This document shows, in pieces, positions 9,901 through 64,000 of a stretch of DNA of 64,000 nt. How positions within the stretch are numbered: position 1 is the stretch's first letter; every line of letters starts with the position of its first letter. The notes under the pieces are model-generated. The model did no database searches, had not been told where the DNA came from, and saw only the letters and a program-made list of their open reading frames with translations. Origin of the DNA: Dimorphilus gyrociliatus (Eukaryota > Animalia > Annelida); assembly GCA_904063045.1 (NCBI GenBank), contig CAJFCJ010000019.1, forward strand, positions 496,001 to 560,000. Direction: 5' to 3'. A program made the position numbers and the translations under genes.

Positions 9901-10600
9901 AGATAATAATCTTTCATCTCCTTCTACATAGAGCTTCCGGAAAATATGATTTGAAAGCATTTTTGTTTACTTAAAACAGGAGCTGGCCAATTCAGCTGTG
10001 CAAGGTATACTGGTTGGAATATCGGTATCTTTTATTATCCTTGTATTGGCTACAAAAAATATCCTTATGGGTTTCATAGCAACTTTTATTATATGTTGCA
10101 TTACTGTTACAGTTGTTGGTCTTATACCCTTGTCTGGTTGGAAGTTAGGCGTTTTGGAATCATTAAATTTAACTTTAGTTGTTGGCTTAGCTGTTGATTA
10201 TGTTGTTCATTTGGCTGAAGCATTTCACGCCTCCGAGAAAAAGGATAGAATTGGAAAAGTTCAAGACATGTTAGAAGGAGTAGGAATTTCCGTTCTGTCT
10301 GGGGCTTTAACCACTTTAGGAGCAAGTTTATTTATGCTATTCGCAAAGATACTTTTCTTTATGCAATTTGGTATATTTATGTTTGGCACCATCAGTTTTT
10401 CCCTCTTCTACGCCCTTGGGCTATTTTCAACAATATTAGGTATAGTCGGACCAGTCAATGACTTTGGTTCAATAGTACCAATCTTCAAATTTCTTAAAAG
10501 ATTAATCACTGGAAGGAAGGAATCTGATATTGATTGTACTAAATGCAAAGGAAAAGGCTTTATAGGACATGAAAACAAAGTTATTGTTGAGAATTCCTAA
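6980..10600 (+). CDS. Dispatched-like RND / sterol-sensing-domain multipass membrane protein, multi-exon
   Basis: Two RND halves with signature helices GIGADDIFV (TM4) and GLAVDYVVHL (TM10), many hydrophobic segments and large luminal loops. First exon MEEGKGRTNIW... ends at a GTAAGT donor; the ORFs at 7119, 8960 and 9998 are its exons. Confidence 0.85.
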
Positions 10601-11032: not shown

Positions 11033-14000
11033 ATGATTTTCGGGAAATTACTCTTTTTTTTAACATATATCATTTCATTTATTGTTTATTCTCATCAACA
11101 AGTAACAACAGGTAAGAATAATAACGGATATAGTAAAAAACTTTACTCCATTATTTATTCAGAAAGTTATTAAATAAGCTTTGTTACGTTTCTTCGTGTA
11201 ATTTCAGATATAAGCATATCAAATGTATTAGAAACAAGCTCCCTTCCACTTAAACAATCAATTGCTACCTCTTTGGATCTACAATTTTCAATTGATAATA
11301 CTGGCTTGAATGTTCCCGCTGCTACTACTCCAGATATTATTTACACATTTTACGTCAGAGTAAATATAATATCCATAAACTAGTTAAATCTTTTCAAAGT
11401 AAAATCTGCGCATTTATCTGCAGTATGAAAATGTTGGCGAAAACTTAGGACTCTCTGAAATATTATTGACTGGGGTAACTCCTAGTCAATCTGATGCTCA
11501 TAATACTGGTCTTACAAAATTATTTTCCGTATCCTCTATATCACTAACCATTCCGGTAATTTCATTTACATATTTAACATAAAACGAATATAACAAACAA
11601 TATTTTCTACATTAAAAGGCGGCAAGCTGTTTAGTTATAACGAAACTTTGCGTCAGGGTTTCACCAAACGTTGCTCATATCACAGACGCCAATGCTGCTA
11701 ATGACTTATCTTGTTTAGATATTGAAAGCAGAAAATCATGCGCTCCGGGTAAATTTGTGTGAACCTATAATTTCTATTATTATTTATAAAATGTGCTATA
11801 AATTTTTAACTATCAGATCCATCTTTGACAACTTTTACATCATTAACTTCATCATCAATATCTACAAACTACTTGAAAAGAGATACTGCAGGCACAATTA
11901 CTTTATCGGTCACCGTTCAAAATTCGGCGGCATCTGGATCAGGCAATGATATAACTGCCGTTACTGGGGCCAGTCAGAACTTTGAGTTTCAATGCACTCT
12001 CGCTGAAGTTGATCTAAAAAGTAATGCAGGAACTTCTTCATATTCATCTCCTTCTGGGATAACAATGGATGTCCAACAAGCACTAAATGCTGGAGCTTCA
12101 GTATCAAGTGATATGACAATTTCCTACACTCTAACATCGGCCAATTGTGCTTCAACCCATTTTATTTGTGTTAAATTATCCATTCCTTCCACAGCCAGCT
12201 ACAATGATATTAATACTGCTGACAGCAGTAATGTTATTTGTACTAGCATTGATACATTGAAAGTTTGTACTCCTCTTCTTGGACTTTCAATTACGTCTTT
12301 GGTATCACAAGCTACTCCACCAATTTATAAAGCGAATGTAGCAACCACAACAAACGTTCTTGTATCAATAGGCAACACAGCAGCAAACACACCATCTGGT
12401 CATGGAAATGATATTCCTCTTGCAGATAGCGGAGGAATCAATTACTTACTAACCGCTAGATTCAGGAACTCTGCAGACAACTTAGGATTAGCATCGCAAA
12501 CCGTAACACTCAATACACCATCTCATGCAGAAAGAGCACTTTCCGCATCGGGAAGTTCAGAAAATTTTGATGGAACTGTTGTTGTGACACTTCCAACAGC
12601 AAATTGTGGTGATATAACATACCTCTGTATTAAGGTTGAAACTGGTACAGGTGCGACATACGTTGCTACAGCCGTTGAACAATGTTCAGATATAACAGCT
12701 ATCAAGTCCTGTCCCACTAATGTCGAAGTAACTGTTTTAGCTATTTCAGGAGGTGGGACTTATCTTAAAAAGGATACTACAACTTCATATTCCACAACAT
12801 CAACAATCTCTAACACTGGATCAAACATTCTTGTTAATCCTTCTCAAGATAACTTTATTATAGAATACCAACTGTCGAATGTCGATGTTAGAAGTACAGG
12901 TTTGGCTTCGAATACTTTAGGCCATACAGCAGTTACAGCCACAGTGACACCGGTCTCCGACTTACGAACTGGTTTATTAAATGCTGGAACGTTTGCATTT
13001 ACGTGTCAAGGCTCAGTACAAAATCCAGTGGGTAAATGTATTGAAACTAGATGGCTTTGCATACATATCTATCCTGCCGGAACAGCCACTTATGAAGATA
13101 CAGATAACACAGATGATTGGAGGTGCATATCGCTTTCCCGTACATGTGATACTGATCCTACAATAAATTTACCTCTTACAATATCGCCAACAAATACTTA
13201 TGCTATACAAGATTCGGCTAATTTGATTGGAATATCGACTGTTGTGGCTAACTCTGCAACATTCACTGTAGGTAACAATATTATAGCAGTCACGGGTTCA
13301 GATGCTAACTTCGCTTTCGAAGTGTCTCTATCAAATGTTGATCTAAGAACAACTGCAGGAACAGAGAGTTGGCAAACTGTTAGTGGAATATCTTCCGGCA
13401 CTCTTCAACAAGGTCTAAATGGTCAAGCAACATTTTCCTTAACGGCCTCCTATAGTTTAACACTAACATCTGCCACGTGTAGCTCGAGTAAATTCTTTTG
13501 TTTGAAATTAATTGTACCAGCCACATCTAGCTATTTGGACATTGATTCAGCAGCATCTAGTAACATTGCTTGTTCTGACCTAAACGCACATAAAGTATGT
13601 GATCCACAGTTAAGTTTAGCCATAACTTCAATTGACCCACAATCTACACCGAAAACCTATAAAGCTGGTATATCTCAAACTATTGATTATGATGTTGTTC
13701 TCTCAAATACTGGGAGCACAACACCGGCCGATCATGGAAACGATATTCCAGCTGCTGTTGGAGCTTCGGACGTCAATTGGCTTTTAAAAACTAGATATAC
13801 TGACAGTGATACTGCAGACACTCTCGCTTTAAGTGAACAAACTGTTACATTAACTACTTCCAGTGTTGGACGAAGTGGATTAGCCGCTGGAGGAACGTTA
13901 AACCTTGTTGGATCTGCAACTATCACTTTACCTTCAGCTCAATGTTCGAGTATTAAATTCTTGTGCATTAGTATTTCACCCGGAAGCATGGCGACCCATA

Positions 14001-59420: not shown

Positions 59421-61190
59421 GACGTACACCTATGTATATTGTCGACAAAGAGTAAAAGGTGTGTATTGTGTACGTGTAATATCAGCGTGTAGTAATTTTA
59501 TGTATAAAACATGCATTCGTAACACATCAAATCTACTACGTAGTTTTGCACCCTTTGTATTAAAGGGAATAAAAGTTATCTTTCGTCTGTAGAAGTTTAC
59601 ACTTGAAAATATTCAAAATATGTTACGTTTCTGCTACATTTTTCAGTATCTAGATAAAACTAGGAAAAGTAGGAAAAGCATACATTTCTTCGTTAATTTT
59701 AACCTTCACTGCGTAAATATTTTCTCAGCCGTTCGTCTCAATCAAAATATCTTGATTACCTTTATAAATAATCTAAGAACAATTCATATCAAATAAGTGG
59801 ATAAAAAATTATCAGAAGAATTATGAATATAAATTGACCAGAGCGACCTATTGTTCGAATTCACGGAAGGAATACCTCAATGCGTTAACAGAAATAGATC
59901 AAGTTGTTTTTTATTAAATATACACATACAGTATATATATCTAATTTCGAACTTAAAATCTAGGTGAAAAAGAAAATTGTGTTTAATTCTTTTGTACTCT
60001 TTTTGAAGAATTTTAATTGTCGAATAGCATGATGCAGTTCAGAGAAACTCTTTGCTTGCCCTAACCCATATGTTCTATATTTCTCATTTTCATAATTGCC
60101 GCCATTTCACTGCTTCCTGGAAATCAAGCGATAAATTATTGTCAATTTCAAAATGTCCGTATAGGCTATTATTTTTTCAAACATCTGTTTTTAGCACAAT
60201 TTAGTTTATACAAAATTACAATTTAAAATTTTTTCTGCGAGACTGCTTCGACTAACTTCCGGTATAATTAGCAAATCTTGCACAGAATTAAAGTTTTCAT
60301 TTTTACTTTAAGTAACATATTGTAAGTATGCAACACATATTATCGTTTAAATAAATTTTTCAGGTATGTAACTGTAAATGTTAAATTAACTGTTTCTTAA
60401 TTGTTAATTAATTTTTTTAAAATGAATTATGGCTACTGTAGCTCATTAACAAGCCTGTCTGTGCGAAATTGCACTAAAAATTGATTATGCTTTCCATGCG
60501 CACTACTAGAAAATTTTTATGACAATGCTATTTTGTGAATATGTTGTAAATAACTCTAAAGCATATTGAATAATATATGCATGTACTGCCATTTAATAGC
60601 TGATGAGCTAAGTCAGAGGAAATATTTAAGAATATCTAAGCCGATATGGAGAGTGAACCTTTCCTCAAGAGGGTTTGTTTATTTTTTCCATCAAGATTAT
60701 TTCACTTAAAATGAAGTTATCTTGCTTTTATTTAAAGTATTTTATAAGTATTCGCTACCAAAGACTTAAAAGGTATTAGAGGTCGATAATTGTATTATTT
60801 CTATAGAGTAATACTAGATGGCAAACCTGAAATACAAAGATATAAAACGGACTGTTTAATTAACTTCTCAATTTCTTTTAAGTTAATACTAATGTAGAAC
60901 AAAAAAAACTGAATTCTTTTATTAAGCATTGATCTAGAGTGTATACTGACTCTAAAAATAGTTTGCAGAATATAGACAATTTATGTAACATTTTTAAGCT
61001 CTTTTACGTTAGATTATGTTATATAAATCACTAAGTTCAATAACCTTTTGTTTAATATCTTTATTATCTTCAATATATAACAGCAGGAACATTATTATAA
61101 CGCAAAGAATGATTTTTAGAATTAAAAAATATTTTTTTCTATTGTTATCTTAAATACACTCTCTAAACGTTATTTTTACAGAGAAATAAC

Positions 61191-62830
61191 ATGGAAGAGG
61201 ACCGCGAACAAGACCCGGACGAACCCGTTGGTCCACCAGATGTGCATATGCAACTAAATGCTAAAACAGATGAGGTTAGTAAACATAGCGTTAAAAATTA
61301 TCGAATCATTGATTTGCAATTTCTCCGTTATATAATAGTGTTTATTTACAATAAATAAGTAAACTGAAGTTTCTTTTCAGACTCTAGAAAGTACAAGACG
61401 TATGGTAGCTTTATGTGAAGAGGTCTGTTCAAATTATATATTAAATAATTCATTCATTTATTTTTATGATTTTTTGATTGATATTTTGACAATCACTTTT
61501 TTTGAAAAAAAGCACAAAAATAGAAATAATTTAAAGGCTAATAATTATAAAACAAACAAAACTGCTGGTTTCCATTGTTTGCTTATTGCCTAACGATTTT
61601 GATAGAGATCACTCTTCAATTGTGAATAGATTTGTCATATACAATATACAGAGCAAGGATGCCGGAATCCGAACTCTTGTTATGTTGGATGAGCAAGGAG
61701 GTACAACGGCGTTGTATTTTAAATATAAACATTTTTCGAGATTGATTGGAAATAATAGCACAATAAAAAAGCATATATAAAAATATATCAAGAGTATCTT
61801 TGATGTCTGTAAGAGTGTTTTGAAGCAGTAAAACCGTTTGATTCCAAAATTCTAATCTATTATTCTGAGAAAGACAAAGCAAAATAGTATATTACTGTAT
61901 ATAAATTACTGACTATTTCTTATCTCCAATCATCTCTTATTAAAAATTATAAATTCTTTTTATTAAAATCTCCAGGCATTTTCATTCACTTTGTATTTCG
62001 TTTTCTAGAGCAATTGGAACGCATTGAAGAAGGAATGGATCAAATCAACCAAGACATGCGTGATGCTGAAAAGAATCTAGAAGGTATGGAGAAGTGCTGC
62101 GGTTTGTGTGTGCTGCCATGGAAACGAGCTAAAAATTTTGAAAAAGATTCCAATTATAAAGATACCTGGAAAGGAAACGAGGATGGAAAGGTTATTTCAA
62201 CTACTTAATTAATTAAATATACATTCACAGGGGACAACTAATGGAGACTAAACTGTTGTACAGATTAATACAAATGGCCCACGCGTTATTGTTGGGGACA
62301 ATGCAGCTGGAATGTCAGGTAATTTGGTAACTAGAATAACAAATGATGCCCGAGAAGATGAAATGGAACAAAATTTAGGCGAAGTTAGCGGAATGATTTC
62401 TAACTTAAGAAATATGGCAGTAGATATGGGAAATGAGTTAGAGTCCCAAAATAGACAGATTGATCGCATTAATCAAAAGGTTTGTGTACAAATGTATATC
62501 GTTATTAAAATTGTTGTCCCCGTTCTTTGACGATTGCTGTTTAAACAAAACAATTTAATTACTTTAGCAATTGTTGAATGGTGTAAACAATAATCCACCT
62601 CACAGTTGGTAGTTAATGTTACAACTAATTGTTCGTTTTTTCCGCACCACTTTTTCAGGGTTTGTCAAATGAAACTCGTATACAAGAGGCGAACAAGAGA
62701 GCTAATAAGCTTCTCCGGGATTAACCCGTTTCTTTTGCTTATTTTTTTCTGTTTTGTCTAGGGCGAATCGCTAGATAATCGTATAAGAGAAGCGGATAAA
62801 AGAACTAAGACCATGCTCTCCAAAAAATGA
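61191..62830 (+). CDS. SNAP25: SNAP-25 (Qbc SNARE), 5 constitutive exons plus two alternative terminal exons (62659-62724 or 62762-62830)
   Basis: DE|[14 protein letters not shown]|[16 protein letters not shown]|[17 protein letters not shown]...[10 protein letters not shown]...|...[15 protein letters not shown]...[18 protein letters not shown]|; each terminal exon has a polypyrimidine-AG acceptor and an in-frame SNARE C-terminus. Confidence 0.96.
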
Positions 62831-63457
62831 ATATCGCTTATTCTTTCGAAGTTAGAAACTGCATAAATATCAATTTCTTCTAGTCAGTAAAAAAAACTGC
62901 ACACTTCCAAGTCTGTACTTGTTGTGTTCTCAAAGCAAATGATTGTGTGTCAACATTCCCTGGTTATACTACTTTTTTAGCATTTTCCTTCGTTTAACTT
63001 CCAATTGTTCTAGGTCACAACGACCAAAAAAAAATTTTTGTGTATTTCGTGTATTTAGTAAAAGAAAAAGCAAAAGAAAGTTCCCTGTGAGATATCTTTT
63101 CTGCAAAATGTTCTAGTCTCTCTTTTCATATCAGATTGTCTATTTTATGAAACAGAAACGATATATAGTTTACACAAGCGCATTTTTCTAGCAATGTGGT
63201 TAAATATACTTTTTAGAATATAGCAACGTTATGGTACAAATTTTCAGTAAGCGTTTAACGTGCTTGATGTTTACTTTATTGCTTACGATTTTAATGCATA
63301 TTTAATAAATAAAAACCACCTAAATAGGTCTATAATTCTTGGATTTTTTCTATTATTGAGAATATTATTTTTTTTATTTCTTTTTTCTCTTTATATTTAC
63401 TTTCCCCCCTCTTTCTCCTTCTTTCGTTCTTGGCCAGTTCAAGGTTAGCCTAGGTCA

Positions 63458-64000
63458 TTACCATATTGCTCGAACATGAACAAGCTTGGTATCTCCACTA
63501 ATCTCCACTGAATTGATACGATCCATTGGTAATCGGTGGGGAAAATCGATTAAGTGTTCTCCATTTATGCATGTCTGTATGTTTACATTAAAACAGAGGG
63601 CATATAAAACTTTTCTGGGAAAGAAATATAAGAAGTTATTTACCCTAAACTGCCTAGACTCGCAAAAAATGAGAATATCTAAATGAACAGCAGGAATAAC
63701 TCTGAAGTCTGCTCGCAATTCAGTTTGCCACTTGGAATTTTCCCAGCTATAGTTGTCGTTAGAAATTATTAATGAAATAGAAAACTAGTAACAACATCCC
63801 TTAGAATGTGATAAGCGTAGAGATATTAGGTCAAGAAGCGAAAGAGTAAATTTATAATTAACCTATTTAGGACAATACAACGTTCTTTAACTCGAAAGCT
63901 CGCGTGATACGCAATTTCCTTCGAGTTCGTCTCTGATGTATCTTCGCTATCTTCCGTAGAATTGCAATGAAAATTTATCTCAAAGCGGACGGCCTCAGTT
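63458..64000 (-). CDS. Galectin-domain protein, 3' part only (5' end lies beyond the window)
   Basis: RFEINFHC...IAYHASFRVKERCIVLNS|WENSKWQTELR...ILIFCESRQFR|TCINGEHLIDFPHRLPMDRINSVEISGDTKLVHV follows the galectin CRD pattern. Confidence 0.75.

Follow-up and report, generated by a model that had tools for sequence, protein, structure and literature searches.

In vertebrates, the SNAP-25a and SNAP-25b isoforms arise from mutually exclusive copies of exon 5, an internal exon that encodes the end of the first SNARE motif together with the cysteine cluster. Layers +3 to +8 of the SNARE bundle are the last to zipper and drive fusion, and in vertebrate SNAP-25 the energy of C-terminal layer assembly is tied to fusion triggering, botulinum toxins A and C cutting the protein in this region. 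A second kind of isoform pair, in which the C-terminal end itself is exchanged, can already be found in the public annotation of molluscs and nemerteans. Isoforms X1/X3 of Pomacea, X1/X2 of Mya and X1/X2 of Dreissena are identical for 194–196 residues and then end in one of two tails, here called A and B; RefSeq entries from Mercenaria and Babylonia belong to the same system, as does the Lymnaea stagnalis UniProt entry Q869G6, which is of B type. Both forms occur among the Logan transcript-derived proteins of Pomacea (P0173, P0174), and the annotated gene end of the nemertean Tubulanus polymorphus coincides exactly with the B stop codon. We found no published description of a SNAP-25 A/B tail pair in the open-access literature.

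Here, a compact SNAP-25 gene is described on the forward strand, at positions 61191–62830, of a 64-kb stretch of DNA from the annelid Dimorphilus gyrociliatus (the whole stretch is referred to as the window). One donor after exon 5 is followed by two phase-0 acceptors 103 nt apart, which lead to tail A or to tail B. As in the vertebrate SNAP-25a/b system, one gene would thereby give two proteins through duplicated exons that alter SNARE-helix residues; in contrast to that system the cysteine-cluster exon is single-copy in Dimorphilus, and the exchange affects the C-terminal end of the second SNARE motif, a distinction drawn correctly in a first-pass annotation of this DNA made from its letters alone. 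The mollusc and nemertean isoforms share with the Dimorphilus gene a single donor after ...RINQK, followed by phase-0 terminal exons A and B in that order, with proteins identical up to the tail. The Dimorphilus locus differs from these in the spacing of the tails (37 nt as against 0.9–8 kb elsewhere), in the strong divergence of its B tail, in that neither tail is annotated and in that splicing to B is unseen in RNA contigs; unlike in molluscs, there is no poly(A) hexamer between the tails and the A message contains B. What is new here is the unannotated exons of Dimorphilus and Owenia, the corrected Dimorphilus C-terminus, the 37-nt spacing and the span of the pair over at least three phyla.

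Results

The SNAP-25 gene of Dimorphilus

The gene, recognised as SNAP-25 in the first-pass annotation, is that of D. gyrociliatus. The best solved-structure match of exon 5 is squid SNAP25 (1l4a_D, E 9e-23), with rat SNAP-25 also matched (1sfc_D, E 9e-20), and exon 5 aligns with the solved SNAP-25 SN2 helices, the zero-layer glutamine (ESQNRQ) included, as a C-terminal Qc SNARE motif does. The protein part encoded by exons 1–5 (P0141) scores 71 bits against PF00835, the SNAP-25 family of Qbc SNAREs, for which the Pfam cut-off is 25, and the central cysteine cluster for palmitoylation is present in exon 4 as KCCGLCVLP. Exons 1–5 correspond residue for residue to the public gene model DgyrCDS11406 (P0141, 207 aa), coding exon 1 being identical to its residues 1–28. 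That model then runs past the exon 5 donor into intron 5 (62480–62530), so that its last 16 residues are translated intron, and it contains neither tail A nor tail B; RNA contigs instead show a splice to tail A. The true C-terminus is missing from the public Dimorphilus SNAP-25 model and is supplied here (Table 1). Exon 5 ends ...ATTAATCAAAAG at 62479, one nucleotide beyond the end given in the first-pass annotation (62478), and the donor GTTTGT (AAG/GTTTGT) begins at 62480.

Table 1. Features of the Dimorphilus SNAP-25 gene, in window coordinates
Feature	Position	Strand	Remarks
5′ UTR exon	60601..60672	+	Limits approximate; 72 loose letters before 61181 in X8/X2 contigs match window 60642–60671
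Coding exon 1	61191..61274	+	ATG at 61191; exon start 61181; joint 61274→61381 in X8 and X2 RNA contigs
Exon 2	61381..61422	+	14 residues; RNA contig joints and translation
Exon 3	61652..61700	+	16 residues, single copy; RNA contig joints
Exon 4	62009..62190	+	End of first SNARE motif, CCGLC palmitoylation cluster, linker; RNA contig joints and translation
Exon 5	62264..62479	+	Second SNARE motif to layer +2, ends RINQK; joints 62190→62264 and 62479→62659
Intron 5	62480..62658	+	Donor GTTTGT, CTAAT branch-like site near 62626, acceptor A; unusually conserved
Tail A	62659..62724	+	21 codons and TAA; major terminal coding segment; joint 62479→62659 in X8 contig
Gap	62725..62761	+	37 nt; holds the acceptor B pyrimidine tract and AG; uninterrupted in X8 and X2 RNA contigs
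Tail B	62762..62830	+	22 codons and TGA; putative alternative terminal coding segment, inside the 3′ UTR of the A form
Shared 3′ UTR	62831..63681	+	Far limit approximate; proximal 200 nt conserved; poly(A) hexamers at 63304 and 63587

No further copy of any of exons 1–5 was found in the 64-kb window, and the tail alone is duplicated. Exon 5 is undivided in Dimorphilus; in most other animals an intron lies just before RITNDARE, where the read-through open reading frames begin, which points to intron loss in a compact genome.

Two terminal segments behind one donor

Tail A is preceded by ctttttcag and tail B, which starts 37 nt past the tail A stop, by tgttttgtctag. Of all acceptors in the gene, those of the two tails have the strongest pyrimidine tracts (18 of 22 positions, as against 9–17 for the other four). 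The coordinates and translations of both tails given in the first-pass annotation are right, and the two are identical at 9 of 21 residues. Tail B was recovered in a six-frame search of the 64-kb window with tail A (E 0.038), with the Pomacea B tail (E 0.008) and with the Owenia B tail (E 0.016) as queries, values that are modest in themselves and that we regard as decisive given position and phase. On this comparison we take tails A and B to be homologous terminal coding segments. AATAAA and ATTAAA are absent from the 37-nt gap, as the first-pass annotation had also reported for AATAAA, and the first such hexamer lies downstream of both tails, at 63304.

A TTAAC that overlaps the TAA stop of tail A is a possible branch site for acceptor B. 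Two further candidate features were rejected. An 11-nt complement between intron 5 (62542–62552) and the B pyrimidine tract, by which RNA pairing could loop out tail A, is not kept in a relative (L001, below), and the fold z-score is only -2.06. A recursive or internal donor inside tail A was also considered; use of the GT at 62660 or at 62679 would shift the frame into early stops.

RNA contigs

The RNA data were assembled contigs only, from four runs; assembly removes low-coverage branches, so minor isoforms can drop out. Spliced contigs from one of these runs, X8, are 100% identical to the window, every intron being removed at GT..AG. An X8 contig of 1423 nt, likewise 100% identical, joins exons 4 and 5 to tail A (62479→62659), then continues unspliced through the gap and tail B into the 3′ UTR, extending past 63500 by about 181 nt. 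The A form thus runs through tail B into one 3′ UTR, in agreement with the shared 3′ end suggested in the first-pass annotation. X2, a marine metatranscriptome, contains a relative of roughly 96% identity, a contig of which spans 62728–63004 contiguously with the gap retained; it shows 0 differences over 62728–62830, as against 5 other letters and 3 gaps over the next 174 nt. Tail A is used and is the main form, and in the A message tail B is 3′ UTR.

Of the two junctions proposed in the first-pass annotation, that to tail A is therefore present; the junction from exon 5 to tail B (62479→62762) was not found in the contigs of the four runs, which may miss a minor form. Because the X8 assembly kept an intron-3-retaining contig at about 2% depth, the B form is probably not abundant in whole animals. 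That contig crosses intron 3 unspliced (61671–62036), its depth being about 2% of that of the spliced form, and represents intron retention or pre-mRNA. In exact searches of JGI metagenome contigs neither the B junction nor the A junction used as a control was found, so this blank says nothing about B. A pyrimidine-rich, low-complexity stretch at 63352–63435 is matched with 90% likeness by many 31-nt contigs from all four runs, which are probably unrelated repeats from other loci.

Conservation of both tails in dinophilid-like relatives

A search with exon 5 gave read-through open reading frames on four genomic contigs (L001–L004) from the Logan assemblies SRR23372228 and SRR23372229. Together these two assemblies contain at least three Dimorphilus-like species, in which the exon 5 protein is 96%, 94% and 83% identical to that of Dimorphilus, and they are a useful comparative source for the Dimorphilus genome. 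L001 and L002 (96%) carry both tails with their amino acids unchanged and with the same 37-nt gap. L003 (94%) has a tail A of 21 residues and a stop and, 42 nt on and behind tattttatttag, a tail B of 22 residues and a stop. L004 (83%) has an A-like tail, at which point the contig ends.

Identity between the window and L001 is 53–80% in introns 1–4, 83% in exon 5, 88% in intron 5, 94% in tail A, 78% in the gap, 96% in tail B (the highest in the gene) and 89% over the proximal 200 nt of the 3′ UTR (62831–63030). A 47-codon core of exon 5 differs from L001 at 25 positions, all of them synonymous, and dS is saturated; both tails show low synonymous change in this comparison (dS 0.24–0.34). All three changes in tail B relative to L001 are synonymous, an outcome with a chance of 0.009 under random substitution. 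Relative to L003 there are 18 nucleotide changes and 8 residue changes in tail B, with frame, length, stop and acceptor retained, and the chance of an intact tail B reading frame with no more than 8 residue changes is 0.0075; the flanking UTR is unalignable. Nei–Gojobori estimates against L003 are dN 0.20 and dS 1.28 for tail B (dN/dS about 0.16) and dN 0.04 and dS 1.36 for tail A, so that at the protein level tail B evolves about five times faster than tail A. Core positions 188, 192, 195, 199 and 202 of tail B are occupied by Leu, Ile, Ala, Ala/Thr and Ile/Met in Dimorphilus and its relatives and are thus hydrophobic or small throughout. These substitution patterns indicate that tail B evolves as coding sequence, under weaker constraint than tail A; neutral decay of a duplicate, which the first-pass annotation had set against its own proposal, is not what the dN/dS ratio suggests. 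The low dS of the tails together with the conserved intron 5 resembles the pattern usual around regulated alternative exons, and the conservation of intron 5 and of the proximal 3′ UTR suggests nucleotide-level regulatory constraint around the point of choice.

Part of the conservation of tail B could itself be non-coding, since intron 5 and the proximal 3′ UTR are also conserved, and this bears on the best-surviving alternative, in which tail B is a relic: an ancestral exon trapped in the 3′ UTR as the genome shrank, no longer spliced, and kept either by UTR or splicing-regulatory constraint or because too little time has passed. Such a history would fit the absence of the B junction from the contigs of four runs with A clearly the main form, the drift of tail B away from the B-type consensus with a dN above that of tail A, and the 88–89% identity of the neighbouring non-coding sequence; it fits poorly with substitutions in tail B that track codons in both comparisons, even where the flanking UTR can no longer be aligned, with a gap just upstream that is only 78% conserved next to a tail at 96%, and with a frame, length, stop position and strong acceptor that are intact in three dinophilid-like genomes. 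We consider a relic unlikely, though it deserves to be kept in mind.

The same tail pair in other animals

In other animals, 10 kb around the SNARE exon was searched for tails. A tail pair was present in bivalve-like and gastropod-like loci, in the early-branching annelid Owenia fusiformis and in the nemertean T. polymorphus (Table 2), in all of which A lies upstream of B and a pyrimidine tract and AG precede each tail. The Owenia B tail (L008:70543–70626) stands behind ctctag, 1469 nt beyond the annotated gene end, and is absent from the gene model. An annelid-like locus (L010) showed a B-like tail only. In an insect-like locus (L011), GESNETRIAVANERAHDLLK at 10351–10413 is followed, 960 nt on, by GEDNKDRLDEASIRAGKLLRS at 11374–11439, in phase and behind tttgtttag; in Drosophila simulans (L012) an A tail stands alone in the 10 kb searched. 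The pair may thus predate Lophotrochozoa, with a loss in flies.

Table 2. Tail pairs found downstream of the SNARE exon in other animals
Locus	Animal	A tail	B tail	A stop to B (nt)
L005	Bivalve-like	SESNESRIKEANTRAAKLLKS	ADSNAARVETANKRANRILRNQ	8341
L006	Bivalve-like	SESNEVRIKEANTRAAKLLKS	AESNTDRVQSANTRANKILRNQ	4612
L007	Gastropod-like	GMSNETRITEANKRATKLLTN	GVSLNDRVDTANKRANKILRNQ	2270
L008	Owenia fusiformis	22 residues, annotated	GSSLDVRIKKANSRASKILQQTSTKPK, unannotated	1469
L009	Tubulanus polymorphus	21 residues	ADSLGTRVDLATKRTQKLAK	895

The presence of an A-then-B pair in Owenia, in a nemertean and in many molluscs indicates that the pair is old and not a local invention, and on this distribution the tail duplication is placed before the annelid/mollusc/nemertean split. 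Conserved tandem exons in annelid and mollusc genomes had been named as a check in the first-pass annotation, whose suggestion of independent evolution is correct only with respect to vertebrates.

Classic alternative last exons each have a poly(A) site of their own. As would be the case here, alternative last exons and tandem 3′ splice sites have one donor facing two acceptors, the upstream terminal exon being skipped. The mollusc loci, in which a poly(A) hexamer follows A at a distance of about 600 nt, fit the classic form; no hexamer lies between the tails in Dimorphilus, L001, L003, Owenia or Tubulanus, so that Dimorphilus, and possibly Owenia and Tubulanus, would differ from it, and the choice of tail would rest on splice-site competition alone.

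The mollusc isoforms of Babylonia (P0146/P0145) and Mercenaria (P0133/P0130) differ in addition over 16 residues that match Dimorphilus exon 3, for example AEDAGIKTIVMLDEQG. This difference suggests two mutually exclusive exons within the first SNARE motif; a second exon 3 like that of the mollusc isoforms was not found in the Dimorphilus gene.

Relationship of the Dimorphilus tails to the A and B types

A-type tails have Ser-Asn at 187–188 within the signature SN..RI.EANKRA.KLL, and B-type tails have Leu at 188 and RV, within SL..RV..ANKRANKILRNQ. Dimorphilus tail A carries the A-type signature and nearly equals the Babylonia A tail, and on a mollusc-trained profile its log-odds of -24 are like those of the Owenia and Tubulanus A tails. 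Assignment of tail B by the same profile was ambiguous: its log-odds are -10.7, as compared with 0.3 for the syntenic tail of L003, +3.5 for Owenia B and +7.1 for Tubulanus B, the B tails of Owenia, Tubulanus and L010 ranging from +3.5 to +16. Tail B has the Leu188 and the 22-residue length of the B type and is otherwise diverged, lacking B hallmarks at 196 (D for N), at 199 (T) and at its end (MLSKK in place of ILRNQ), and its mean identities are 8.0 to mollusc A tails and 8.1 to mollusc B tails. The syntenic tail of L003, also of 22 residues, ends in ILVNQ-stop (compare ILRNQ-stop) and has 10.8 identities to mollusc B tails as against 8.0 to A tails. On synteny, order, phase, Leu at layer +4 and length, Dimorphilus tail B is quite probably orthologous to the mollusc B tail.

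An alternative origin, in which the last exon was copied recently within the dinophilids and the resulting tails have nothing to do with the A/B pairs known from molluscs and other worms, appears very improbable. In its favour are the near-equal likeness of tail B to mollusc A and B tails, its A-like score in the crude profile and its I192 and E194, which A tails share. Against it stand the tails of Owenia, Tubulanus and molluscs, which agree in order, phase and position, the B-type Leu at layer +4, the L003 tail that is nearer to mollusc B, and the wide separation of Dimorphilus tails A and B in nucleotide sequence.

Discussion

The reading we favour, with some reserve, is that Dimorphilus retains in compacted form an ancient lophotrochozoan pair of alternative tails, its last intron having one donor and two competing acceptors. 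In this compact genome the tails would have been squeezed to 37 nt apart with one common 3′ end. When the donor at 62480 is joined to the near acceptor (62659), the protein has 212 residues and ends in tail A, the remainder, tail B included, serving as 3′ UTR. Were the same donor joined to the far acceptor (62762), tail A would be removed within a 282-nt intron, by way of a branch point inside the gap or just ahead of it, and the protein would have 213 residues and end in tail B. That tail B is spliced in Dimorphilus is, judging from its substitution pattern and acceptor, rather likely; if it is spliced, the product is probably a minor or cell-type-specific form.

The two proteins would differ in their last 21–22 residues alone, which correspond to layers +3 to +8 of the second SNARE helix. 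We take the tails to supply these layers of the Qc helix on human SNAP-25 numbering, on which the Dimorphilus tails A and B have N/L at +4, A/T at +7 and L/M at +8; the isoform differences listed in the first-pass annotation hold on this numbering. At layers +4, +5 and +8, with the same assignment, A tails across phyla carry Asn, Ile and Leu, and B tails carry Leu, Val and Ile together with an invariant RNQ terminus; Dimorphilus tail B has Leu, Ile and Met at these layers and Thr at +7. Both Dimorphilus tails have Ser187, and neither has the basic residue found at +2 in the vertebrate PKC site. Replacement of Asn by Leu at layer +4 would make the core more hydrophobic and should stabilise C-terminal zippering, and from the layers affected we infer that the tail swap tunes this step.

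The choice between tails A and B could, in our view with about even chances, amount to an isoform system that is lophotrochozoan-wide, perhaps protostome-wide, that takes the role of the vertebrate a/b switch and that is without a published description; in Dimorphilus, with its acceptors 103 nt apart, it would have become pure splice-site competition controlled by conserved sequence in intron 5, the tails and the proximal UTR. The Dimorphilus locus offers a very small and tractable minigene for such a choice, with two strong acceptors and only 282 nt from the donor to the far acceptor. A conserved two-state C-terminal segment would give SNARE biophysicists a pair tested by evolution, alternating between Asn and Leu at layer +4, between Ile and Val at +5 and between Leu and Ile or Met at +8.
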